From: Hypanus sabinus
Taxonomy: Eukaryota
Direction: 5' to 3'
Assembly (NCBI RefSeq): GCF_030144855.1
Contig: NC_082722.1
Span: 27,590,001-27,654,000, forward strand
Length of the DNA: 64,000 nt
The translations under genes were made by a program, and so were the position numbers. Below, in pieces: positions 14,471 to 53,660 of the stretch (positions are counted from its first letter, which is position 1; each line of letters starts with the position of its first letter). The notes beneath the pieces are model-generated. The model was not told the DNA's origin. It ran no database searches and was given only the letters and a program-made list of their open reading frames with translations.

Positions 14471-16554
14471 GAATGAGAATGATGAAATATTTCAAAAGTT
14501 AGAGAGATCAATTTTCATGCCTTCATGTTGGAGTCCACCTGGACTGAAGAAAAAGGTGATGATATTTCGAGGACGTTCAGTTATAAATGCTAACAGTTTC
14601 ATTTTCGGTGAAAGGGGGAGAGCTCTGGCGCAGTCTCCATTTTGTTACAATGCCAAAGGTCTGCTCAGGTTTGTAAACTGATCTTCATTTGGGATAATGT
14701 TGGTCTTATTTACTGATTTCCTCCCGCATTCCAAAGACAACGTTGAGAGTGCTAATTGGTTAGGTGGGTGTAATTCGGCGGTACAAAATAGTTGAGCCGG
14801 GCGGCTTTGATACAATGCTAGATCTCAAAAGCAAGTTCATATTCACGCGGATCTGACTGCTTTACCTGAGATTAGATAATGCGTACTTCTTGTTGTCGAT
14901 TTTTGCGAAATCCTGTGCTCTCTGTCATACTTAGTGAATCATAGGCAGTGGCGTGCTCAACCACTGCTTGTTCAGCCTGCTAGAAAGAAAAAAAACATGT
15001 TTAATACTGCTTACTGATATTAAGAAATGGGATTAATATGGAATCTATAGATTTAGATATGGATTTAGATTTAATCTAAATGTGAAGTTCGAGCCTCTTT
15101 AGCGGGATCCATCGATTCCACCAACCATGCACCTCCTTCGCTGTCTTTAGCAGTCCTTGCAGGTGGTTAGGACTAAAGACACACGCCTCCTGCTTGCCAT
15201 CGAGTTGTACAGAAGCGACGTTTTTACATTCAGCCTCTGCTGCTTGTGGTGCTCTGAACAATTCAACACTTCCAACATTTTCAGTGTTTCTCTTTTCATT
15301 TCCTTGGTAGGGTCCGACGAGGTCCACCGTTGTGAACGGGAAAGGTGCAGCAGGTTCAATTCATTCGGGCGGTAAGTCACCCATTACTTGTTAGCATGTC
15401 CTCGCTTTTGCCTTCCTGCAGAGAATGCAGGCATCGACAACGTTTTGGGCAATTTTCCTTCCCCTTATGACCCATTCCTTTCTTCTCATCTGGAGCAAGG
15501 TTCCGACCACTCCGTCATGGCTTTCAGTGACCATGAACTAAGTTTGTTTCGGAATATGTAACGATAGAAAAGGATTTAAAATAGTTGAAATAATTTTCTG
15601 ACTGTGCACAAAAATATTGTCCGTATATCATACAGGACTGGGATACCAAATCCATTTCAGGCTTAAAATCGTTATGTTCACTTTAGTTTTCCAAACGACC
15701 AGTTAAAAATTCCTATCAATCGCCGAGTTTCTCGGTTCTGGCAATCTATTTTGTTTCATTTATTTTGTCATATCCCTTACGTTCCTCCAAATTCTGTGCA
15801 TGGGCTTTATCCGATCCGTTTCCCTCACGCAGCCCGTCAAATAATTTTAATGAGCAGATATCCTCCCCCCGGTGCTGTTAGAACCTGTGACCCTTAAAAC
15901 TGGCATTGTTTAGGTTAGGAGCTTAGAACAAATGGCAAGAACTGATGTATTTACGGAAAGAAGGCAGCAAATACGGGAGAGGCCTCTTACCCGCTGTTGA
16001 GCTGATTGGTTTTCTTGGTGAATCCACTAAATTACGATCGAATTAAGTAAAGCAGTTGGACATGCCCTTTACAGTAGATCGTTAAAATAGCATTTTCTTT
16101 GGCTGAAACAATGACATAGCATTCCAGAGCAATTAAGCAGCAGTAAAAATTGTATCTTCAATCTTCCAGCTTCAACTTGTATATTACTCGCATAAGCAGT
16201 CCTTCACGGAAGTATTTACGGAGTTCTACTATAATGAAGCCAGTATTATATATGGAACTAGGTTTTGGTGATGTGAAACGTTGCTGCAGCTGCTATCGTT
16301 ACCTAAAAGTAAAACTATGCGCTAAAATTGGAAAGGTGATTATTGGAACACAAGAAGACGCTTCCAGTTGTAGACTAGATGAGTATACAACCGATGAAGA
16401 TTTAATATATGCTAACAGGAGAATCTAGGTGCCCCAAATTTAATAACATTGAACTACTGGAAATCTGAAGGAAAACGGACAAATTAAGCACACGGTAGAT
16501 CTGGAAACTCGAGAGCAAAGAGTTAAAAGGTTAAAAGAGAGCAAAGGTTAACCT

Positions 16555-16878
16555 TTACGTTGCTTTCTGGGGGGGCGGGTGTTCAATCTGAAGGGACAAC
16601 CGTTTCTCCCTCCAAAGATGTCGTTTGAGGTTTTTAATATCTGGTTTGAATCCAAAATGAGAGATGGCAGAATTCTTATGTCTCAGGCACTTCCTTTGAA
16701 ATTGAGGATGACCGTCATTCAGCAGAGGCTTGTAGATTAGAAGGTGTCTTGTGGAGTTTCGTTTGGTTATCATTGTGCACCAGATACTACAAGGTCTTCT
16801 TCTATATTCGATTACATTGCAGGTTATAACCGACGGTGTGGGACTTTGCTGGGAATCGGGGTTAGAAACTGCACTTGA
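16555..16878 (-). CDS. VJ-C1 receptor, candidate last (cytoplasmic) exon containing ITIM-like LIYKPL
   Basis: Phase-0 acceptor cttgttttggaaag|TCA, then 108 codons open to TAA (SSAVSNPDSQQSPTPS...HLLIYKPLL...QKAT*). An alternative in-frame acceptor ttcccag|CAA lies 30 nt downstream. AATAAA on the minus strand at 15759-15764. Confidence 0.45.
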   Translation of the reverse strand, partial: SSAVSNPDSQQSPTPSVITCNVIEYRRRPCSIWCTMITKRNSTRHLLIYKPLLNDGHPQFQRKCLRHKNSAISHFGFKPDIKNLKRHLWREKRLSLQIEHPPPQKAT

Positions 16879-17347
16879 CTTTCCAAAACAAGATATCGTT
16901 GAAATTTTAATCCTGCTTACTGTGCGTTCAAATGAAATGTAACATATATTGCGAAATGAGTCGTGCGTGTACTGTATTTTCTAATTGGCACTACACCGCG
17001 ATTCTCGTAAACCGACATTTCACATCTAAAACGTCACAGTCTTAGATTTGTATTAGTTATTCGTCACACGAACTATGAGTAACAGCTTAAATTCCATTAG
17101 TTAATATCACCGTGCACCTTGATATAACTGTAATGAACTGGTGTGGAATTTCTAATGACGATATGAAACATATTCAACAGGAATATTCAAATACATCCTG
17201 GATGTATACATCAAAATAAAGAGTTGTCAGACAGAATCGTTTCATTCTTCCCGACTGCATTCCAAAATATTATGGAGCAAAATAAATTGATAATATCTCT
17301 ACTATTCGCATACGCTTCTCTGAAAGAAGACGAGCCAATTCACCTAC

Positions 17348-17379
17348 CGGCTCTTCATCCTGAGATCCCTCCAAAGAAC
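17348..17379 (-). CDS. VJ-C1 receptor, candidate short cytoplasmic exon (G)SLEGSQDEEP
   Basis: cag|GT...CCG|gtaggt, 32 nt, phase 1 to 0, in frame between the TM exon and the last exon. Confidence 0.5.
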
Positions 17380-17916
17380 CTGTGTTAATCCCTTAAGAAA
17401 GATAAAATAAATTATTTGTTTTGTAAAAATTGGACATTATTCGTTTGATACCGATCGAATTCATTGTGTAAGAGGAACTGTTTAAGACACGGATATTTAG
17501 ACTTAGACTAAAAAGCTAAGTCTTAACGAAGCTTAAACAGTCTTTGACTGCTAACGAAGCTGTAAAGTGATAGTAGCATATCAGTGGCCGTACTACATTT
17601 AAATACTGTCGCTGAAATGGAAGTTAAGATCAATGTTCTTTGCGCTTCAAAATATGGATCTGCCATTGTGTTTCAAACAGTTGAAGAACTCCAAAGTGAT
17701 TGAAAAGCATTTGTGAATGAGATGTGTAATACTTCGTGTGGACTGGTGAAACGGTTGAATTTAAGACCTATCTTCTATTGTAACCGAATATTATCTGAAA
17801 TCTGGCTTCGAAAATCGCGATCCATGTCAAATTATTTTCTGTTTTGAAGTTAAATGTCATTTACGCGTCCGTTTGAACTAATAGAGGTGATGTTTCTCAG
17901 AGATCAGCGTTCTTAC

Positions 17917-18027
17917 CATGCGATCTCTTTAAGTTGACTTTCATAATAATTATTATCAGTGCTAAAATTGCCAATCCGTCCACTGTGTATGCGAGAATCA
18001 ATTTAAGATCAGCGCCTTGTGGATGAA
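17917..18027 (-). CDS. VJ-C1 receptor transmembrane exon (V)HPQGADLKLILAYTVDGLAILALIIIIMKVNLKRSH
   Basis: Strong acceptor tttcttgttttcccacag and donor G|gtaaga, 111 nt, phase 1/1. About 20 hydrophobic residues followed by a basic stop-transfer segment. Confidence 0.8.
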
Positions 18028-18614
18028 CTGTGGGAAAACAAGAAACTGTGAAGCATTTATTCAGCTAAAAACAAATGCACACATGAGAATCAACAATGCA
18101 AAATAGGTTATATGCTCGTTACCAATCTCACTGCCAACGATCGGAAAATATATCGTAAGATATGGAAATGTATATTCGCACATTTGTTATATCACTATGT
18201 GTTTTATAGTTTACGTTTAGCTTTGTCATATTTTTAGCAAATGTCCAGACGTTTGGTACCGTACAATTACAGCACGTATTCAATTTCGTAATTCGTCCTA
18301 CACGATTTACACCGACGGGAATAACACATTAACTACTAAACACCTTTCACGTCTAATATTCCCTGTCAATTACTAATCTTCAAAATTAGTGTTTGCGTAG
18401 CTGTTCAGTTACTGTTCTTAACAAGCTTACATTGACCTCACCATTATGACTTGTAAGCACTTCCGTCTTACATTGAGCGCAAAAGATTCTGAACATGCTG
18501 AACTCCAGAGTAACACAAAAAATCCTGGAAGAACTCAGTTATTCAGGCAAATCTAAAGTGTCGACGTTTACGGCCCAGATCCAATATCATGACTTCATCA
18601 AGACTACATCTTAC

Positions 18615-18908
18615 CTTGCTCCTGTGTGTAGCTGAAAACGGCAGGCACCGTCAAGGAGACATGCAACACCAGACAAGTGTAAATATCTTTTCCCCAAGTA
18701 GACTGCGTGACTTCTAATAAACTAGTAGCTTCGTACAAGCCATCCACGTTTTGCATTGTCGTATTTTCTATTCCAGTGTGAATTTGTTTGTTATTTCTTT
18801 GCCAAACGATTTCTAATTTCTCTGGGAAGAAGGCAGCCGTTTTACAAAGGAGCTTTCGAGGAGACGAAAACCCTCCAATCGGAACAATTGCTAATGGAGT
18901 TGGAAGAG
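18615..18908 (-). CDS. Ig C1-set domain exon of the VJ-C1 receptor
   Basis: LLCKTAAFFPEKLEIVW...QNVDGLYEATSLLEV...YTCLVLHVSL (C, FxP, W, N.DG.Y, YxCxVxH). Acceptor tttgtttttactcaag, donor G|gtaaga, 294 nt, phase 1/1. Confidence 0.92.
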
Positions 18909-20364
18909 CTTGAGTAAAAACAAAGTTATATTGGGTATTTTCGATCCATTTCAATGCAGGTAAATTAATTTATCTCCCCACCAACTAGCATGACATTCCA
19001 ACTATCAAATTAGTTACCCGCCAGTACTAACCAGTATTTAATAAATTCTTTCAATTTCATGTTCTGTTTATTGTTACTCAACCATATACACACACCGCTA
19101 AGCGAACCATTGTTCTTTTGGGTCAAAGTTGCAAAATACAATACAGTATATGTAGTCACATACAACACGTATAGCTACCGTCCAGCACAGATAGTCACAA
19201 AATAAGCAAAATACAAACGTTTGTAAAACAGTCACCTTGGGAGCTGGATGAAAGGAAGAGTTCAGAGAATACAGTGACGAAGAGTTCCCGAGTGAGGAAG
19301 ACATTCTATTTTCAATGGTATTTGAGCTTTGTTACACAGTTGGGCTTGCGGCGACCGTTAACTTTATAAAGCTGGCTACAATTGGATTTTGATTTTCGTA
19401 TCAAGACTGAGCTACAAAACCCAAAATATCACAAATTTCTATAGTACAAATGCACATGGAGTTTAATATTCTGGTTGTTCAACTGCTTAGGAAGTGTTCC
19501 AGGTCTTGGGATGAGCTTCCCAGTAATAAACATTCAGTAATGCAGCTTTCCCCGGAATGTGAACCATTCCCGCAACAGTTTCTCAGTATTGAATGTGGCA
19601 GATGATATCCTCCGTGAAACAACCAAAAACGCAAATACAAATTGATATTAAGCGGCTTGATTCCATAGTTCCATACTTTCTAAACCCTGAATTCCTGCAG
19701 CAAAATTGTCGACAGTGTCTTGGTGCTGCTATAGGATCGTTTGTGGAAATTGCGAGTTAAATTTTAAGGTTTTGTAAACGTGGACTGCTTCCACTACCGT
19801 TGTGGTCGGTGTCTAACATGGGAGATTAAATAGTTAGATAGCTTTATCCGCCTCTCACAGCAGTTAGGATTTCACTTTGTCTACAATAGCCATCCGGAGC
19901 TCACGGTTGCCTGACTCCACTCCCCACGCCCATACCGACGTCAACGTTCTTGGACTTCTCAAATTCTTTTTAAGGACAATTCTAAGGAGAAGAAAAATCG
20001 AAGGGCTTCTGCAGATACACTAAGAACAAAGGGATAGCGACAGATAAAATTGATCCATTTGAAGATCAACAGGTTCAACAATGCATGGAGCCGAAAGAGA
20101 TGGGGCGGGAGAGCGGAATATCTTATCCATTTCCATTTGTATTTTTCACGGGAGACTTACACATCGACTGTACAACTAAAGCAAACCAGAAGCAATGTCG
20201 TGGCCCATATACAGATTACAGGATGAGGCAAATTAGGGCCCAGGACATGGCAAGGTGTCCCATCGGACCTCGTTGGAAGCTAAAGCAGAATATGAAAGGG
20301 CCCCTATAGAGGTACTCGTGGGTGTGGTGTCGGAAAACTACGGTATAACTAATGTTTTAAGACC

Positions 20365-21420
20365 ATATGACTATTGGATATAGGAGCCGAATTAGGCCAG
20401 TTGGTCCAACAATTTTGCTCTGCCATTTCATCACAGTTAATATTTTCCTTTCAGCCCAAATCTGCTTCCTTCTCCCCGTAGCTGTTCATGTCCTAACCAA
20501 TCAAGTATCTATTACCTCTGTTTTAAATATCCATAATGACTTGGTCTCCATAGCAGCCTGTGGCAAAAAAAAGTATCTGCTTCATCTCATTTTAAAAGGA
20601 TACCACTCTATTCTGTGGCAGAGTCCTCTGGTATTATATTCTCCCACCGTCGGAGACATCCTCTCCACATCCACACTATCAAGTACCTTCATGTTTCAAA
20701 AGATTTCAATGCGGACGCCACTATTATTTTCTGAATTCTAGTTAAAATAGGCCCAGAGCCGTGAAACGATCTCATATGACTAGCTATTTATCAATGACAT
20801 ATAACCTTAAAAGAATTGGTCACAACCCAGACCCCTGTGGAACACCAGTAGTCACGGACAGCCAACTAGATTCCCATTCTTTGTCTCTTACCAATCAGTT
20901 ACGGCTTTATCCACCCTAGAATCTTTCCTGCAATACTTTGTGCTCGTATCTGGTTAAACAGCTTGGGCATGGTACCTTGTCAGAGGCCTTCTGAAAATCC
21001 AAGTACACAACAACTGATTCTACGTATCTTTATCTATCCTGCTTTTCCATCCTTCAAATAATTTAATCAGATTTGCCTGGCAAGAGTTTCCCTTCAGGAT
21101 ATCATACTAAATATGGACTGTGTTATTATGTGCCTCCGAGTAACTTAAAACCTGTTCCTTAATAACGCACTCCAACACTTTGTCAGCCAATGAGGAAGAC
21201 TGACCGGCCTACAGTTTCGCTTTTCTGCCTCTCTGCCTTCTTGAGGAGTGGAGTGACATTTGCAATTTTCCGGTCTATCAGAACCATTCTAGAAGCTAGT
21301 AATTCTCTACAATCTCACCAGCACCTTTTATCAGAATCCTGAGATGCACATCATCAGGTCCAGATGAATTACCTATCTTCAGACCTTTCAGTTTCCCAAG
21401 AACTTGCTCTGCAATTATGT
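20365..21420 (-). mobile_element. CR1 LINE fragments (3' end and RT), degraded
   Basis: Reverse CR1 tail (accata..taggagccgaattaggcc) followed by reverse RT sequence (..gaggccttctgaaaatccaagta..). Confidence 0.65.
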
Positions 21421-21439
21421 TTCTAGTTTAGCTGCTGTT

Positions 21440-21900
21440 CAAGATATACTCTCGGAATAAGCCGGGATAATATAGACTTGTTGGTATTTTAGAAATGTGG
21501 GCAATTTATTGGAAGATGTTCTAAAGAATAGGATATATAAATATTTGGTTAGACTGGGCTTTACTGGGAATTGACCCCATTGTTTTCTGCAAGGTAGGTT
21601 GTGCCTAACCAATCTTAATGAGCTTATCGAGCGGGTTACCATTGATGTTGATGAAGGATACCAGTGGATATGGTCAACATGAATTTTAGCAAGGTCTTTG
21701 GAAAGATTCTGCAATGGGGTGGTGGTCTGATCAGGCACGTTCGCTTGGCATTCGGGATGAAGAAGTAAGTTGTATCTAACGTTTGCTCCGCCGGAGAAGC
21801 CAGAGTATGGTAGCAGATAGTTGTTCTTTGACTAGTGCTATGTCACATGAGTATCATAGCTCGAAGCGGGTTACGGACCAGGTGGGCTGAAAATGGCAGA
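21440..21900 (+). mobile_element. CR1 LINE RT fragment, degraded
   Basis: ggcaatttattggaagatgttcta...ggtaggttgtgcctaaccaatctt...gaattttagcaagg, corresponding to GxLLE..GRxCLTNL..DFSK. Confidence 0.65.
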
Positions 21901-22539
21901 TATAATTTAATGAAGGTAATTGCAAGCTGTTGTGCAACGCTATCAAAATTCACCCTGATGCTGAGAGGTCTTTATTTCTCCCCATTTCGTATGGTGAATG
22001 AAATATAGATTTTGCTAATCCTGCATGACAAAAGGTGGAATGACAATTTGCAGTGCATGCGACAAATTGTTAGTGATGCTGGAATTAACTCGTTTAAAGC
22101 TGGGTATTATTCCTCTCTACTTTTGATGCCGATATGGAGCATTGTGCTGCTGCATACAGACATTTTGATATGGATTATATAAGTTTTCATATTTTGCTGC
22201 TCTATGATGACGAATCGAGTTATCCAACTCCAGCCATTCACATTAGTATGAATATTATTTCGACTTCTTTCTTACACAGCAATTCTAGCCTTGCTTGAAA
22301 AGTATTCCGTTGCATTCAGAATTAACTCTATTATGCGCTTTAAAGGTGCTACGTAAAATGTGATTAATTCTTCTAATCTTTGTAATTATGAACTTAGAAC
22401 ATCTGGACTTGGGTGTATTGAAAAGAGGGAAACAAATGTACTCTCGCCGTTTGTTTTAACAAATTGAAACATCTTATCCTCATCACTAAGTTTGATGTAA
22501 AATGCACAGAGCTGAAAATCTCCAAACAGCCACACTCAC

Positions 22540-22845
22540 CGAACACAGAGAGCCTGGTGCCATTTCCTCTCCCGAGATATCGTTCTTGATACCTTGCTAC
22601 ACAGTAATACATTCCGGAGTCGGCGACTTTGACATTCCAGAGTACAAGTGAACCCCTTCCCCTTTCGAGAGTAAATTGTCTTCTGTCGTCCTTTACTAAC
22701 AATGTCTTCTCGCTGTCCTTCCACCAACGGACGTCAACAGTATCTTGCAATAGTGGAAATTTGCAGAACATGGTAACATTCGCACCTCGCAGGACGTTCA
22801 GGTCCCTAGGGAATTGAGATACTTCGCTCGCAGTTACTTTGACGG
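22540..22845 (-). CDS. Ig V-set exon with germline-fused J-like strand (VJ domain, NKp30-like)
   Basis: EVSQFPRDLNVLRGANVTMFCKF..VRWWKD..SLVLWNVKVADSGMYYC..GRGNGTRLSVF shows canonical C, W, L, D.G.YYC and G-x-G-T-x-L-x-V. Acceptor cttatttttccggcag, donor G|gtgagt, 306 nt, phase 1/1, joining C1 in frame. Confidence 0.93.
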
Positions 22846-23998
22846 CTGCCGGAAAAATAAGCAAGAGTGTTAGTAACAGTTAAACACAATGAATTAACAA
22901 AAAATACTAAAGACGTTAGTCCCTGGACATCGAAGAGCGAAAGACGAACGAATAGTTGAAACACTGTAACCAGATATGCTGCGGGCACCCAGGATTAAAT
23001 ATTCAAAAATAGAATATTCAGTTCGGAAGTGGCAGTTATAAATCAGCATACTTAGCCAAGTAATAGCCAGAAATGCCATGTACGAAACCCTCAATTTCAC
23101 CGACATCTTGCAGAATCCTAATGGACCAACTCCTGCAATGCAAGTGGTGTTTTAAAGAATTTGCTGGAGGAAAAGGTCTCCTTGAGGAAATGCATTAAAC
23201 ATGTAAACATGACGTAGGATGACGCCCCCGTAATGCAGAATAATGTGGTTCAGAGTTAAAATCTGCCTGGGCTGGGAGGAAAATAAGGACTCTAACAGTT
23301 CTAATTTTTTTGCATGGCCTACCTAGTACTTTCGTGATAATGCTGGAAATTTTGCCCTCTTGCCAAATTCAGGAATTATCCAAATGTTTATTGAGATATA
23401 AACTCAAATCCGTACTCTGCGCATTTTGATGGTAAAGATGGAAATCCGCTTAGGAGTTGAAGAATGTCTAATAAGATAGGCGGGCAAACTAATAACAACA
23501 TTTCTTCATTCTAATTTATCTTTGCAGTTTTCTCCATTTCAATGAGATACCTTCAGTGAAATAGCTCATTGCTGGTTTCTCCAGTAAAGCAGTTGCGCTT
23601 TTACGACCAGAAGGTTTTAAGCCGCGAAGGGTAGGGACGGAATTACATAAATGAAAATATTTCTTTCTCTTGATAATTTCCTTAAGGTTTTGGTTATAAC
23701 AGTTCGACTAATGAACTACTGATTAACGTCCAGATTGCAAACCAAAAAGGAAATGATGAACGAGACTGAATTGAATAGCAAGTACATTCCCTCGGACGTC
23801 GTCAAGTACACACATCTCCGGCACAATGTTTGTTTTGGATTCTGAGAATTGATGACTATTTTTTCAGCAATTTTCGTGTAATTTAAATGCTGAAGTTTCA
23901 GGAAACAAAAACATTTAATGTGAAAACGTCACGAATTAATTCCAGTGACAGATTTCAGGGTTTTTTTTTCAAAGTAGGCCCCATAATGAGGGCCCATA

Positions 23999-24678
23999 AT
24001 GGAGTTTCATGTAGATAGGGTGGTGAAGAGGGCTTTTGGAACGCTGGCCTTTATAAATCAAAACATTGAGTACAGAATTTGGGATGTAATGCTAAAGTTG
24101 TACAAGGCATTGGTAAGGCCAAATTTGGAATATTGTGTGCAGTTCTGGTCACCGAATTATAGGAAAGATATCAATAAATTAGAGAGAGTGCAGAGACGAT
24201 TTACTAGGATGTTACCTGGGTTTCAGCAATTAAGTTACAGAGAAAGGTTGAACAAGTTAGGTCTCTATTCATTGGAGCGTAGAAGGTTGAGGGGGGATTT
24301 GATCGAGGTATTTAAAATTTTGAGAGGGATAGATAGAGTTGACGTGAACAGACTGTTTCCTTTGAGAGTAGGGGAGATTCAAACTAGAGGACATGATTTG
24401 AGAGTTAGGGGGCAGAAGTTTAAGGGAAACACGAGGGGGTATTTCTTTATTCAAAGAGTGATAGCTGTGTGGAATGAGCTTCCTGTAGAAGTAGTAGAGG
24501 CCAGTTCAGTTGTGTCATTTAAGGTAAAATTGGATAGGTATATGGACAGGAAAGGAGTGGAGGGTTATGGGCTGAGTGCGGGTAGGTGGGACTAGGTGAG
24601 ATTAAGGGTTCGGCACGGACTAGGAGGGCCAAGATGGCCTGTTTCCGTGCTGTGATTGTTATATGGTTATATGGTTAT
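23999..24678 (+). mobile_element. Young 5'-truncated CR1 LINE (RT C-terminus and 3' UTR)
   Basis: Uninterrupted 198-aa ORF (LYKALVRPNLEYCVQFWSP..LERVQRRFTRMLPG..RGDLIEVFKIL) ending in a (tatggtta)n-type tail. Confidence 0.93.
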
Positions 24679-40879: not shown

Positions 40880-41542
40880 AAAAAATATCAAAAACACAGA
40901 ATAAGAAAACCAACAATGGGAAGATGATTCATGCAGAAAATGCCAAGAGACACCAGAAGCAAACAAACAGATAACAGGATCTTGCAGTAGTTGAAGTCAA
41001 TCAGATTACTTACACAGGGGCAATCAAGTGGCAAACGTCGTTTACCAAAATCTTGTTTTAAGTTTCCAACTCAGAAGTGGAATCATACCTTACATCAATC
41101 CGTGTCTGGTTCAGTTTGAGAGTCAGAGTCTCACAATGTATATTACCCCTCATCCATTATTACAAATGGGACCATTTATAATAACGGTCCGCATATAAAT
41201 ATTACAGGATAAAGAAGCAAAAACTATTTACCTAATATATGTAGCTTGGCCAAGTACGCACAATATACAGAAATCAATTATTGAAAGTCACATGAAATTG
41301 AAAGAGAAAATTGAAAGACTATGGAACATGAACAGGGTCTTCCATGTCACAATCGTGATATCTACAACTGATATTATCCCGAAGTCATTACATAAAAGCA
41401 TTGAACCATTAGGTCTCCACTGTAATATTTATTGAAAAATCTCCAGAAAGCCACAATGCTAAACACCACTCTGAATTTTGCAATCAATTGAGAAATTAAC
41501 TTGCTTGGCTACGCTCGCACTTCAGACTTTACCAGCACGAAA

Positions 41543-47446: not shown

Positions 47447-48451
47447 GACTCCTTCCGTTTAAGCAAGATTGCTCATCTTGCTAAAAGAAAGGTAAAAACA
47501 AAAACCTGTAGGTTAGGAGTATTTAAAGTTATAGCTTCATTTGCAATAATACCAAACAAGGCAGTAAGGGGATTTGGGTCAATTTGGACCGTAAAAAGTT
47601 GTGAAAAGTTATGGAATACTTCCCGCCCAAACTTTTCAATTTTAGGGCAAAACCAAAACATATGAATTAAAGAAGCATCAGCAGAGTTGCATTTATTACA
47701 AAGTGAAGAAACATTCGGGTAAAACCTGGAGAGCTTCTGTTTAGAAATGTAAGCTGTCTGAACCACATTAAATTGCAGAAGAGAATGACGAGAACAAAAA
47801 GATGATTTATGAACCTGTTTAAGAATTTTACTCCATCTATCATCAGAAATCTGACAATTTAGGTCATCCTGCCAAGCCTTTTCTATTTTATCTAAAAAGA
47901 TTTGTCTAGAATTAATCAACAAGTTATAGATACCGGTAATAGAACCATGAACAAAAGAAGAGCAATCTTGCTTAAATGGAAGGAGTCCATCTTCAATGGC
48001 TACGTGATATGATGCCGTATTTAAATTTAGAAAAGATCCGCTGCTCAGTCTTTCCGAAACAATATTTTTTTAATGATATTTGGGGACATTTCCTAAATTA
48101 CTTTCCCAATTTATAAAGTTTAACAGTGCACAGACTTTTATGTATATTTTTATCTTCTCTTCTTAGGTGAATATGTTGTTTTTTCTAATAATCCATTGCC
48201 ATCCATCAGCTTTTTTCTTTGGTAGTTGGTAGGGGGTTGACTTTTTTTAATATATAAAAAATTTATTTTATGATGTATGACCTATCTTTAATTTTTTGGT
48301 TACAGAGTGGTATACCTTTATGTGTTATGCTATAACATTTTGATCATTTTTATTACAATATATGAATGTACACAAGTTATGTTGAGATGTATCTATGTGT
48401 TGCACTTTGTAAATCTTTTTTTTCTTCTGCATAAAAATATTGTAAAAAGAA
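47447..48451 (+). mobile_element. L1-clade 3' fragment with inverted 5' part (twin priming) and 13-bp TSD
   Basis: TSD aggaaatatgcta at 47434-47446 and 48452-48464. The zf-RVT ORF (LCNKCNSADASLIHMFWFCP) is on the minus strand at 47473-47922. The ORF2 end (RRAILLKWKES), 3' UTR and A-rich tail are on the plus strand. Confidence 0.88.
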
Positions 48452-48819
48452 AGGAAATATGCTAAGAACATGAGCTGTAAGGTAAATGAAAGCAAGTCCA
48501 TCGTTTATTGAATCAGTTCAGGATCGAGAACCGTGAAATGATCCACATTGGTTTAGAAACCTGATGGTTGAAGGTAATCACTGTTCCTAAACCTGGTGGT
48601 CTCGGACCTAAGGCTGCTGCTTTTCCTTCCTGATGGCAGCCGCGATAAGAGAGTAATACTGTGACTTAGCACTCTGATACTATGCTCAGACCACCAGACG
48701 TAATGTCTCGGGTCTAAGCATCGGCAGACTTATCTCCCTCCTTTATAGTTATTTTCCGGAGATTTATATTATAGCAAGGCAGTTAACACCATCTACCCCG
48801 TAAAATCAAACAGTAAACT

Positions 48820-49660
48820 AAAAACTGGCCCTCAATACGCCCTTGTGCAGATAGATCCTGGATTTCCTTACTGTGGACTCCAGCGTTAGGTTTCGTTCGG
48901 ATTGTAAAACACTTTCCTTCACAATGTCCATCGGCACAGGATCACCGCAGAGAACGTATGTAGCCCCCTCCTCCACTCGCTTTATATCTACATTTGTGCA
49001 GCTATGTACAGATCCAACACCAGATACAAATTTGATTATGACACTACATTTGTCGGCAGTATCAAAATCAGCATACAGGAGGGATATTGAAAACTTGGTT
49101 GTGTGATGTAATAACAACAGCCTCTCACTCAATGTCAATAAGACCAAGAAGCTGATTGAAGACTTCAGTAAAGGAAAACTGGAGGCCAAGAGCCAGTAAT
49201 CATCGGAGGATCAGAGCTGGATAGGGTCAGTTACTTAAACGTCCTAGGTGTCACTATCTGAGAGGACATGTCCTGGACACATTATATAAATATTATAGTG
49301 AAGAAAGCACGACAGCGCCTTTACTTGCTAAGGAGGTTCAGCATGTTATCGACAACCTTGGCAAACTTCTATAAATAAGTGTTGGAAATTATGCTGACTG
49401 GCTGTATTCCAGCCTGGTAAGGGAACAGCAATGCCTTTGAGCGGAAAATCCTGCAGAAGTAGTGGATTCGTTCCAGTACATCAAGGTTAAATCCTCCCGA
49501 CCATTGAGCACATCTACATGAAACGTTGCCAAAGTAAAGCAGAATCAATCATCAAAGATCCTCACCACCCAGGACATGTTCTTTTCTTGCTGTGGCTATC
49601 AGGATGAAGGTACAAGTGCCTCAGGACTCATACCACCAGGTTCAAGAACAGTTACTATAA
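48820..49660 (+). mobile_element. Rex1/Babar-like LINE RT fragment
   Basis: Degenerate LNTPLC.WILDFLT...STG.PQ...AYRRDIENLV.WCNNN.LSLNVNKTKKLI.DF. Confidence 0.8.
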
Positions 49661-49669
49661 ATTGGAAAC

Positions 49670-52600
49670 TGTCTATTTAAAGGAAACAATTCAATCTTAT
49701 TAAGATTTAATTTATACCCGGAAAAATGACTAAATTGAGCCAACAATGATAAAGCTACAGGAATAGATTTCTCAGGATCAGAAATAAATAATAATAAATC
49801 ATCTGTATATAATGATAACTTAAGTCCATCTGTCCCACGATAATGCCAAACATGTTCTGTGATTCTCTTATAGCATTTGCCAAGGATTCTGAAGCACTAA
49901 GAGGACAGCCTTGTCTAGTACCTCGAAATAAACGAAAAAAGGGAGATATTTGATTGTTGGTAAGCACCGAGGCTACTGGAGTATGATATATCAGTTTAAT
50001 CCAGGAATTGGTCTAAAATTAAACTTCTCAAGCACATTAAATAAGTATGGTCATTCAACTCTATCAATTGCTTACTCCGCATCTAATGAAATTACACATT
50101 CGGAAGTGCTATGTGAAGGAGTATAAACAATATTCAATAATCTCCTATCATTGAAAAAAGCATAGCGATTTTTAATAAAACCGGTTTGATTTTCCGAAAT
50201 AATTTGGGGTAAGACCTTCACAAGCCTGGATACCTGTAACTTGGAAAAGATCTTAGAATCTCCATTCAATAAAGATATTGGTCTATAGGATGCACAGTCG
50301 GTAGGGTCTTTATCTTTCTTCAATATTAAAGAAATGGAAGCTCCATAAAAAGATTGTGGCAAATTGCCCAATCTAATTCCTTCTTCATAAACGCTGCATA
50401 ACCAAGTAAAAAGAGTAGCGGAAAAACATTTTAAAATTTCTACTGTATACCCATCTGGACCTGGTGCTTTCCCAGAATTCATAGAGGAAATAACCCCTTT
50501 ATTTTCTGCATCCGTAATAGGAGTTTCTAATATTGAAAGATCATCTGATGATAATTTTGGAAAATTCAATTTCCCAAGAAAATCACACATTGGATTACGA
50601 TCAAGAGGGAATTCGGAATGATACAGGGAGGTATAAAAATCTTGAAATGATTTATTTATCTCATCATGGTTAACTGTCAGATCCCCATTCTGCTGACGGA
50701 TCTCAGTAATTTGACGTTTAACCAAAGCATGCTTCAACAGACTAGCTAACAGTTTACCCGATTTATCACTATGTATATAAAAATCAGATCTGGTTTTCAT
50801 TAATTGATTTTCAATCGAAGATGTAAGGAATAAGCTATGTTCCGTTTGAAGTTCAACCCTTTGTTTGTAAAGCTCCTTACTAGGAGTAATCGAATATTTC
50901 TTGTCAATGTCTTTAATTTTATCAACCAACAAAAGAGTTTCCTTCTTGATGCGTTTTAGCAGACCAACAGATTAGGTGATAACCTGTCCACGTATATATG
51001 CTTTAAAAGTGTCCCAAAGTGTTCCGCAAGACATATCATCCGTGGAATTAGTTAAAAAGAAGAAATCGATCGGTTCCTTCATAAATTTAATAAAATCCGG
51101 AACTTGCAGTAAAGTAGCTTCTAGCACTAGAAGCTGTATCCGTAAATTTAATAGAAAGTTTTAATGGAGCATGGTCAAAGATGGCTATAATATCATAATT
51201 ACAACCAATTACCAATGGAATAAAACAAGAGTCAATAAAATAATCAATTCTCGAGTAGGAATGATAAACATGTGACAAAAATGAAAACTCATTGTCCTTA
51301 GAATGCCGAAATCTCCAAATATCAAAAATTCCATTATCAGTCAAAAAAGAGTTAATACAATTGTCCGACTTACTAGGTAAAGTCTGAGTAGATATAGATT
51401 TGTCCACCAAAGGATTTAAACTACAATTAAAGTCACCACCCATTATTAACTTATATTCATTTAGATTAGGTAGAGAAGTAAATAAGGACTTAGAAAAATC
51501 GGGACAATCCACATTTGGAGCATAAACATTAACCATAGCAACCTTTTTGTTAAAAACTAAGTCAGTAATTAACAAAAATCTACCATTCGGATCCGAAAAG
51601 ACATCATGTTGGATAAATGGAATAGAGGAGTCAATGAAAATTGAAACTCCCTTTACTTTGGCATTTGAATTCGAATGATACTGTTGATCCCTGCAAATCC
51701 TAAAAAAGTGATAATTGACCTCGTTCCTCACAACAGTTTCTTGTGCAAAAATAATATGAGCATTAAGTCTTTGGAATACTTTGAAAATCTTTTTGCGTTT
51801 AATCGGATGGTTTAAGCCATTAGTATTCTAACAGACAAAATTAATGGTCTGAGCCATATTTCTGAAATCAACCCATGGTATATAAAGGGTTAACCAATTT
51901 ATAAACTCATGCACCCGGAAGATGAACAAAACTAAGGGGAGGACCCGGAAGTGACGACATCGCGGACGTATTGGTAGTTTAAAATCAGCCCAAATGAAAA
52001 AACTAAAAAAACTGATAAAAGAAACATAAGATTTAGAAAAAGACCTCCCACCCACCACCCAAGAGGAAAAAACAAGACTATCCCAGCAAGGGATAGGCTG
52101 GGAAAAAGAAAAGATGAAACTAAATCTACCCCCATATCAGCAGAAGACAACTCCGTATATAAAGGATAAATAAAAAGATCCACCCAAACGCTAAAGAAAT
52201 AATAATCAATATACAAAAATCAAACCACTTAATATAATTGGTAGTAAAAAAAAACAACAAGAGTATAATCACTAGTAACTTATAAATCGGGTTAAAACTC
52301 AAACAAACTAAAAAAAAATAAACTATATTAAGAGATGCATTATAGGAAGAAGACGAGAGAAAATAAAATGGGGAAATCAAAAAAAAAAGCCAAAAATGTT
52401 TTAGAGAAGAAACCTCCATCTTAGTAAAAAAAAATTCACCTTCGAATGATTAATAATAATGACGAAAGATAAAGTACAGTGGTTGAAGTAAGTAAAATAC
52501 AAAGAACAGCATGTCGAGAAAAAAAAACTTTAACTAGAGTATAAAATATAGAGTAAACCTACACGAATAGCCAGAAGCAAAATCTGGTTTTGGAAATAAA

Positions 52601-53660
52601 AAACATCTTGCACGATCAAAATCACTCATTTATGTGGAATGAGTGCCCGTAGCAGTAGGGAAGTTCTCCTCCAGAAAGCTTCTCGCATCAGATGTAGAAA
52701 GGAAAACTCGATTGGTGCATTTGGAGGCGATATTCTGAACTTCGCTGGGTATAAGAGCGCAGGTTTTAGATTTTTCTCATAACATTCAGACATCAGAGGT
52801 TTAAAAACAAGCCTTGCCTTCATTACTTCTGGACTAACGTCTTCTACTAAACGAAAATTGTGATCTTGAAATTTGACCATCCCTACATGCCGAGCCACAC
52901 GAATAAGTTGCTCTTTAACATTCACATAGTGAAATCGAACAATTACAACCGGTGGTTTAGCTAAAGCAATTGGTGATCGACGAGAATTCTGTGAGCGCGA
53001 TCGAGTAACGGAGGACTGTCTGGGAATACAGAAGGGAACGCATCCTTTCAAAGTTGAGCAAAATACTTCGGGTGGTCCCCTTGTTCAATACCTTTCCGGA
53101 AGACCAAGAATGCGTGGGTTCTGTCTTCTGGACTGATTCTCAAAGTCGTCACTCTTGGCTTTAAGTGTTTCCACCTGCTTAATCGTCGGAAGTAAGTTCT
53201 GCTCCATTTTATCAATTATCAAATCTCGCTTCAGAGCGTCTTCTTGCAGAGTTACGATTACAACTTGCTGCTGGTTAACTACAGAATCCGGCTTATCCAT
53301 ATAATCTTGAAAAGCCTTTATATCTTGTTTAAAAATTTGTCGTTGTTCTTCAAATTTTTGATTTAAAACCTCCAATAACATTTCATAAGTCAATTCAGTG
53401 CCCTTCGCATCAGTCGTCTTATTCTTCCCGTTACCGTTAAAATCCTTCCCGTGTTCTCGCCCTTTAGATCTAAGAGCCATTTCTGTATTCTTTTCTTCAA
53501 AAATTCACAATAAACTCTTAAAGATAAGTCCAATAAAGTAACAAGAATCTTTTGGAGTAGGTAAAAATAAGTTAAATAAGGGTGATCATAGGTTTTAAAA
53601 AGTAAAGGTTATGGAGCAAATCTGGAACAGTGCTCACTCCATGAGCGTCTCCTGCTGACC
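49670..53660 (-). mobile_element. L1-clade element: 5' UTR, ORF1, APE and N-terminal RT, with the 3' half missing
   Basis: ORF1 has a coiled coil plus ENQSRRQNPRILGLPE and PALLYPAK. APE: NVYAPN, IMGGDFN, SRIDYF. RT: GKAPGPDGY, SYRPISLLN, RGTRQGCPLS. Multiple frameshifts. Confidence 0.93.

Follow-up and report, generated by a model that had tools for sequence, protein, structure and literature searches.

A 64,000-nucleotide (nt) stretch of the genome of the stingray Hypanus sabinus (NCBI RefSeq assembly GCF_030144855.1, contig NC_082722.1, positions 27,590,001 to 27,654,000; hereafter the window, with positions counted from its first letter) contains a real, intact gene for a surface receptor, in which a VJ-type immunoglobulin (Ig) V domain is followed by one C1 domain and a transmembrane (TM) helix. 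This gene (hereafter the window gene) is a member of a multigene VJ-C1-TM family of cartilaginous fishes that has no established name. Non-rearranging VJ-C1 genes are sought as clues to the origin of antibodies and T cell receptors (TCRs), with UrIg, UrIg2 and NCR3 as the current examples. Comparison with its relatives makes it fairly probable that the window gene encodes not an antigen-receptor ancestor but the adaptor-coupled counterpart of inhibitory family members, whose tails carry immunoreceptor tyrosine-based inhibitory motifs (ITIMs) or switch motifs (ITSMs).

Structure of the gene and its predicted transcripts

The window gene lies on the minus strand and consists of six intact exons running from 23106 to the stop codon at 14872, with a relic exon that extends to 13195. 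Spliced together, the coding exons give an open frame of 305 amino acids (aa) without interruption, and the product is a type I membrane protein. Its signal peptide, VJ-type V domain, C1 domain and short stalk are followed by a TM helix, at whose centre lies an Asp, and by a tail of 54 aa. The features are as follows (family proteins are cited by P numbers).

23106-23052, minus strand: leader exon; ATG at 23106, MSVKLRVSYMAFLAITWL plus 1 nt, phase 1, donor GTATGC
22845-22540, minus strand: VJ exon; 306 nt, phase 1-1, AG acceptor and GT donor, V-set domain plus J-type motif
18908-18615, minus strand: C1 exon; 294 nt, phase 1-1, AG acceptor and GT donor, containing FFPE... and YTCLVLH
18027-17917, minus strand: stalk/TM exon; 111 nt, phase 1, AG acceptor and GT donor, TM helix LKLILAYTVDGLAILALIIIIM
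17980-17978, minus strand: GAC codon of the mid-membrane Asp, read directly from the sequence
17391-17348, minus strand: cytoplasmic exon 1; 44 nt (GINTGSLEGSQDEEP), phase 1 to 0, HGINTGSL or HGINTSSL in homologues
14979-14866, minus strand: cytoplasmic exon 2; QAEQAVVEHATAYDSLSMTESTGFRKNRQQEVRII followed by the stop, 88.6% identity to P0008 (E = 2e-15, tblastn)
14874-14872, minus strand: TAA stop; the same codon encodes Tyr (...IIYSQ) in ITIM-bearing relatives
13326-13195, minus strand: relic ITIM/ITSM exon, 3' of the stop; 76% identity to Mobula P0012 (E = 1e-17, tblastn)

The leader exon is 68% identical to the leaders of P0001 and P0002 (tblastn), and its splice to the V exon is in frame, yielding ...WLTVKVTASEV as in the homologues. 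Pfam recognizes a V-set domain in the VJ exon (E = 1.6e-11) and a C1-set domain in the C1 exon (E = 2.2e-14), both above the gathering score, and the V exon closes with the J-type motif GNGTRLSVF (22567-22544; pattern GxGTxLxV). The stalk/TM exon is 95% identical to P0008, and its helix reads LILAYTVDGLAILALIIIIM, with the Asp present and no Lys or Arg in the core. Cytoplasmic exon 2 retains one TxYxxL motif (TAYDSL) and has an intact GTAAAG donor 6 nt past the stop. Further downstream, the relic exon has kept an open frame but lost its two tyrosines, with LTYAAL changed to LTFVAL and (A/T)LYADV to ILPADI; the exon is probably now part of the 3' untranslated region (UTR). A third Tyr-to-Phe change (IFSQ, 13338-13327) was dropped because this stretch is the intron acceptor region and lies outside the exon.

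Part of this structure had been proposed in an earlier sequence-only reading, which joined five exons into a germline VJ-C1-TM gene of a cartilaginous fish that lacks recombination signal sequences (RSSs). That description of the gene is borne out: the V, C1 and TM exons lie exactly where they had been placed, with GT-AG sites and phase 1, and the Pfam V-set and C1-set assignments agree. V and J do share one exon, as the GNGTRLSVF motif is inside the 306-nt V exon, and a heptamer-spacer-nonamer scan of all 64 kb gave a single weak match at 41013, distant from the V exon. Both tail exons had to be replaced. The first, given as 32 nt, used the wrong acceptor, since the RSHGINTGSL of the homologues needs the AAG acceptor at 17392, which makes the exon 44 nt long and in frame with its donor unchanged. 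The second, a 324-nt last exon at 16878-16555, matches none of the 115 family proteins and no Pfam family above the cut-off; it is ruled out as part of the window gene, as homologues place the next exon at 14979-14866. The leader and the relic last exon had been overlooked, so that the gene spans 23106-13195, past the limits first proposed.

Several observations concern possible alternative transcripts. Cytoplasmic exon 2 has a tandem TAG-CAG acceptor (NAGNAG; 14985-14974, minus strand) that may add or drop one Gln, and the homologues differ by precisely the one Gln that this choice would change. Read-through of the exon-4 donor (17347-17270, minus strand) gives a 25-aa peptide, VGELARLLSEKRMRIVEILSIYFAP, ending at a stop at 17272-17270. 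In tblastn it aligns across the donor with the tail of Mobula P0017 at 56% identity (E = 2e-6), and the annotated C-termini of Mobula P0011 and P0017 are its equivalent, which suggests that intron retention may give rise to a conserved isoform with an alternative short tail. Read-through of the C1 donor (18614-18604, minus strand) encodes GKM and then a stop. The RefSeq model P0001 ends in exactly this way, and is either truncated or reflects a secreted V-C1 isoform. Lastly, the Mobula birostris model P0006 lacks C1, its VJ being followed directly by the TM and an ITIM tail, and represents either skipping of the C1 exon or a V-only form resembling the NKp30/PRARP architecture.

The family and its charged sublineage

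A search with the V-containing open reading frame (ORF) returned stingray and manta proteins, led by P0001 of H. sabinus (96%) and followed by proteins of Hemitrygon akajei and Mobula. The V domain of the window gene is 97% identical to that of P0001, and its C1 and TM/tail regions are 91% and 92% identical to those of P0008 (Hemitrygon); together with these identities, the leader, VJ, C1 and TM exons place it in the family. No other family gene or Ig exon was found in the window, where tblastn with 115 proteins matched the window gene alone, and no second C1-like exon was found there either.

The family profile finds further members in sawfish, electric ray, skate, six shark genera and the chimaera Callorhinchus. 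An exhaustive HMMER search gave 111 representatives at E < 1e-30, some of which are giant multi-Ig proteins and not family members; the compact V-C1-TM matches that were looked up (n = 20) all came from cartilaginous fish, except for two without a source name. RefSeq names of members scatter across NCR3LG1-like, SIRP-alpha-like, tapasin-related-like, Ig lambda-like, TCR beta-like, PD-L1-like and MHC class II-like, as would be expected of automatic naming in a family without a curated name. The suggestion that the family might be undescribed therefore holds in part: members are already predicted in RefSeq under these inconsistent names, and no paper describing a VJ-C1-TM family was found in the literature searched, which did not cover Kinlein 2021, Flajnik 2012, Flajnik 2023 or Ohta & Flajnik 2015, and in which Fu 2019 (PRARP) was not located.

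We tabulated the TM helix and tail of 79 family members with a clear TM helix. The helix is uncharged in 54 of these, with a median tail of 85.5 aa, and ITIM/ITSM motifs occur in 34 of the 54, typically as LTYAAL plus the ITSM-like TEYAxL. Another 22 of the 79 have Arg or Lys in the helix core and a median tail of 29.5 aa, and only 4 of the 22 carry any such motif. Because uncharged helices go with long ITIM/ITSM tails and basic helices with short tails, the family has the layout of paired inhibitory and activating innate receptors. Most uncharged-TM members also have a conserved Cys at the outer TM edge (ILSCVVGG, IAGCAGGG; for example, P0002, P0012 and P0070), where the Asp/Lys sublineage described below has Tyr; this Cys may be an interchain disulphide site that was lost in that sublineage.

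The window gene had been likened to an antigen-receptor chain, and the V-C1-TM order of a TCR chain is indeed there, but the TM residue is Asp instead of the Lys or Arg that TCR chains use for CD3, and the family is divided into ITIM/ITSM and charged-TM forms. The window gene is not an isolated relic; it is one copy within a family of >100 representatives from rays, sharks and a chimaera, and is not by itself evidence for an ancestor predating RAG.

At the mid-TM position, Asp is found in the window gene, P0008 (Hemitrygon) and P0019 (Hypanus), Lys in P0013 (Mobula) and Gly in the ITIM-bearing paralogues. The same four genes, from three genera, share both the charged position and the stop: the tails of P0008, P0013 and P0019 end at the same ...RII as that of the window gene (...EVRII), whereas in ITIM-bearing relatives the frame runs on through IIYSQ into the ITIM exon. 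The window gene belongs to a myliobatiform (stingray/manta) sublineage that, on sequence comparison, is derived from the ITIM type.

Trees of the two halves of the protein differ. In the TM/tail tree, the four Asp/Lys-type sequences form one clade (support 94/97). In the ectodomain tree they are scattered among paralogues, and forcing them together costs 212 log-likelihood units (approximately unbiased test, p-AU = 1.8e-42); here the window gene clusters with P0001 and P0008 (support 100/99). Relative to P0019, the other annotated Asp-type protein of H. sabinus, the window gene is 48% identical in V and 73% identical in TM/tail, and a homologue search restricted to TM/tail returned only P0008, P0013 and P0028. 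The signalling module is therefore older than the stingray-manta split and has been joined to different ligand-binding modules. The Asp/Lys TM/tail is thus an old lineage combined with very different ectodomains by exchange between paralogues, and the signalling and ligand-binding modules have separate histories. The window gene also records a stepwise change from an inhibitory to a charged-TM receptor, visible in the conversion of a Tyr codon to a stop, in an ITIM exon left as a fossil and in the replacement of a Gly by Asp or Lys. Alternation between Asp and Lys at a single TM position is unusual. What stands out in the window gene is the switch between acidic and basic TM residues, together with its fossil ITIM exon and modular history; the family itself had already been publicly predicted.

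Derivation from the ITIM type involved conversion of the Tyr codon to a stop (...EVRII*), with the old ITIM exon left downstream and both of its tyrosines replaced, and conversion of the TM Gly to Asp in stingrays or Lys in Mobula. The mRNA of the window gene should evade nonsense-mediated decay (NMD), provided that the downstream exon is still spliced as 3' UTR, because the stop lies only 6 nt before the last exon junction. Recruitment of SHP phosphatases through the ITIMs would be lost, and a membrane partner, on which the protein would depend, would dock at the TM charge. The receptor could then play an activating or modulating role opposite inhibitory relatives with similar ligands, and the remaining TxYxxL might act as a switch motif. 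Activating forms of paired receptors are recognized by a charged TM and the loss of ITIMs, and the window gene has both, in the Asp codon (17980-17978), the stop (14874-14872) and the relic exon without tyrosines.

By analogy with known receptors, the Mobula Lys is of the kind that classically docks an acidic adaptor pair. The stingray Asp lies outside this scheme, and CD16A offers a precedent for it. The relevant sequence in Fc receptors is FAVDT. With no basic residue in its TM, CD16A joins zeta-zeta or gamma-gamma by means of an FxxDT motif (PMC13107469). Like the TM helices of CD16A and FcepsilonRI-alpha, that of the window gene has no basic residue and places its Asp three residues past an aromatic one (YTVDG); unlike them, it lacks a Thr after the Asp, and no homology is implied.

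Several points weigh against an adaptor-coupled receptor. Classical activating receptors use Lys or Arg, and an Asp cannot form the usual contact with the Asp pair of DAP12, FcRgamma or CD3zeta. The likeness to CD16A is loose, as YTVDG lies in the outer half of the helix and FxxDT in the inner half. We found no ITIM-bearing partner with a near-identical ectodomain: P0002 and P0003, the nearest relatives (V 86-87%), have an uncharged TM but short tails in their RefSeq models, the models of the closest ectodomains (P0001 and P0002/P0003) lack ITIMs, and among ITIM-bearing paralogues of H. sabinus the nearest, P0015, reaches only 70% identity in V. No protein identical to the window-gene product surfaced in the databases searched. 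Finally, the association between TM charge and tail motif across the family (Fisher p = 8e-4) counts related sequences as independent and is indicative only.

The stop and the Asp could also be damage to a former inhibitory receptor, leaving a signalling-dead decoy that acts as a ligand sink at most, or a copy on its way to becoming a pseudogene. The loss of the ITIM/ITSM tyrosines and the lack of an identical protein among those annotated would agree with this, and an Asp in a TM helix often causes retention in the endoplasmic reticulum when no partner is present. We nevertheless consider either of these unlikely, as the six coding exons, their splice sites and the 305-aa frame are all intact, the same stop and charged position have been kept in four genes of three genera, the Mobula charge is Lys, the classical adaptor-docking residue, and the stop is positioned where NMD should be avoided.

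Relation to known receptor families

For structural comparison we used the AlphaFold model of P0001, the closest ectodomain (predicted local distance difference test score 87.9). Foldseek searches against Swiss-Prot returned PD-L1, B7-H6, butyrophilins, CD276, SIRP-alpha/beta, TAPBPR, Ig light chains and TCR-beta with E values of 4e-14 to 2e-12 and 16-25% identity, none of them standing out. In PDB, the top matches of the modelled ectodomain were Ig light chains (~3e-15, roughly 20% identity). Among PDB sequences, the best non-antibody matches of the family profile were UrIg2 and SIRP-alpha, and the C1 exon matched UrIg2 (top) and the constant domains of IgM and IgA best. Overall, the family is both SIRP-like and antigen-receptor-like in build, and these searches revealed no clear orthologue among SIRP, NKp30, B7 and UrIg.

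A true cartilaginous-fish orthologue of SIRP, of the SIRP-beta-like kind, would make this a known family and would bear on its naming but not on the mechanism. SIRPs combine a germline V that has a J-type G strand with C1-set domains, and they are VJ-C1 paired receptors with ITIM-tailed and charged-TM, short-tail members. The best non-antibody two-domain PDB match of the family profile is SIRP-alpha (2wng, 4.5e-32, covering V and C1), with SIRP-gamma at 1.3e-26; SIRP-alpha-like proteins are the most frequent kind among the nearest ESM Atlas clusters (22 of 100), and several members are named SIRP-alpha-like in RefSeq. Tail motifs are less telling, because LxYAxL and TEYAxI are common to many ITIM/ITSM receptors. 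We regard orthology as quite unlikely, given that SIRPs are V-C1-C1 and the chondrichthyan family has a single C1, and that Foldseek ranks SIRP-alpha/beta (22-24% identity, ~1e-12) on a par with PD-L1, B7-H6, butyrophilins, TAPBPR, Ig light chains and TCR-beta in Swiss-Prot. Moreover, the origin of the SIRP family was placed in Tetrapoda by a 2026 survey (PMC13262535). The charged TM residue is Lys in SIRPs and Asp in the window gene. If the paired VJ-C1-TM family is what it appears to be, it would bear on whether SIRP-like receptors predate tetrapods, and would put the VJ-C1 ectodomain in innate-type paired signalling in the oldest jawed vertebrates.

UrIg and UrIg2, non-rearranging VJ-C1 genes of elasmobranchs (Flajnik et al. 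2023, 2025), share with the window gene a single-exon VJ and a split leader followed by C1-type domains, and likewise come from cartilaginous fish. However, UrIg is secreted with three C1 domains and UrIg2 has 9-11 C domains, so that at least three C1 domains stand against the one of the window gene; they are also single- or few-copy genes and not an ITIM/charged-TM paired multigene family. B7-H6, PD-L1 and butyrophilins have a V plus C ectodomain, rank highest in the Foldseek search of Swiss-Prot (4e-14 to 1e-13) and gave many members their RefSeq names, but differ from the chondrichthyan family in its J-type motif, Pfam C1-set domain and paired pattern, and are only ~21% identical.

TCR and Ig light chains resemble the window gene in their V(J)-C1 layout, phase-1 exons and C1-set domain after V. 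In contrast to these chains, the window gene has V and J in one exon without an RSS, an acidic and not a basic TM residue and no stalk Cys for an interchain bond, and its relatives carry ITIM/ITSM tails. Asp-type and Arg/Lys-type family chains both occur in the same genomes, and an Asp chain might pair in the membrane with an Arg/Lys chain of the same family to give a TCR-like but non-rearranging germline VJ-C1 heterodimer. We consider this highly improbable; if true, the heterodimer would be a living model of an antigen receptor predating RAG.

A likeness to NKp30 (NCR3) is seen in the charged TM of its activating form and in the GNGTRL J motif, which we presume to be the same in human NKp30. 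Membership in the shark NCR3/NKp30 family (Kinlein et al. 2021), which is likewise based on a non-rearranging VJ-type V gene and is multi-copy in sharks (PMC12227049), is very improbable, because NKp30 has a V domain only whereas the window gene has a C1 spliced in frame, the J consensus of the chondrichthyan family is GxGSxLxV with GNGTRL confined to the small clade of the window gene, and NKp30 is not among the top PDB or Swiss-Prot matches. A further difference is the TM residue of NKp30, which is Arg and not Asp.

The rest of the window

An Rfam search of the window gave no matches, and outside the receptor gene the window consists of retroelement debris. One part is a broken L1-like retroelement (47473-53480, minus strand) with several ORFs, in which an ORF1 RBD-like domain (7e-5), an endonuclease, a reverse transcriptase (2.6e-7) and a zf-RVT domain can be recognized. 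Just upstream of the leader exon, a 198-aa ORF (23999-24595, plus strand) has no Pfam match but is similar to the C-terminal portion of a LINE reverse transcriptase, and intron 2 of the receptor gene likewise contains fragments of reverse-transcriptase type (20800-21450, minus strand).

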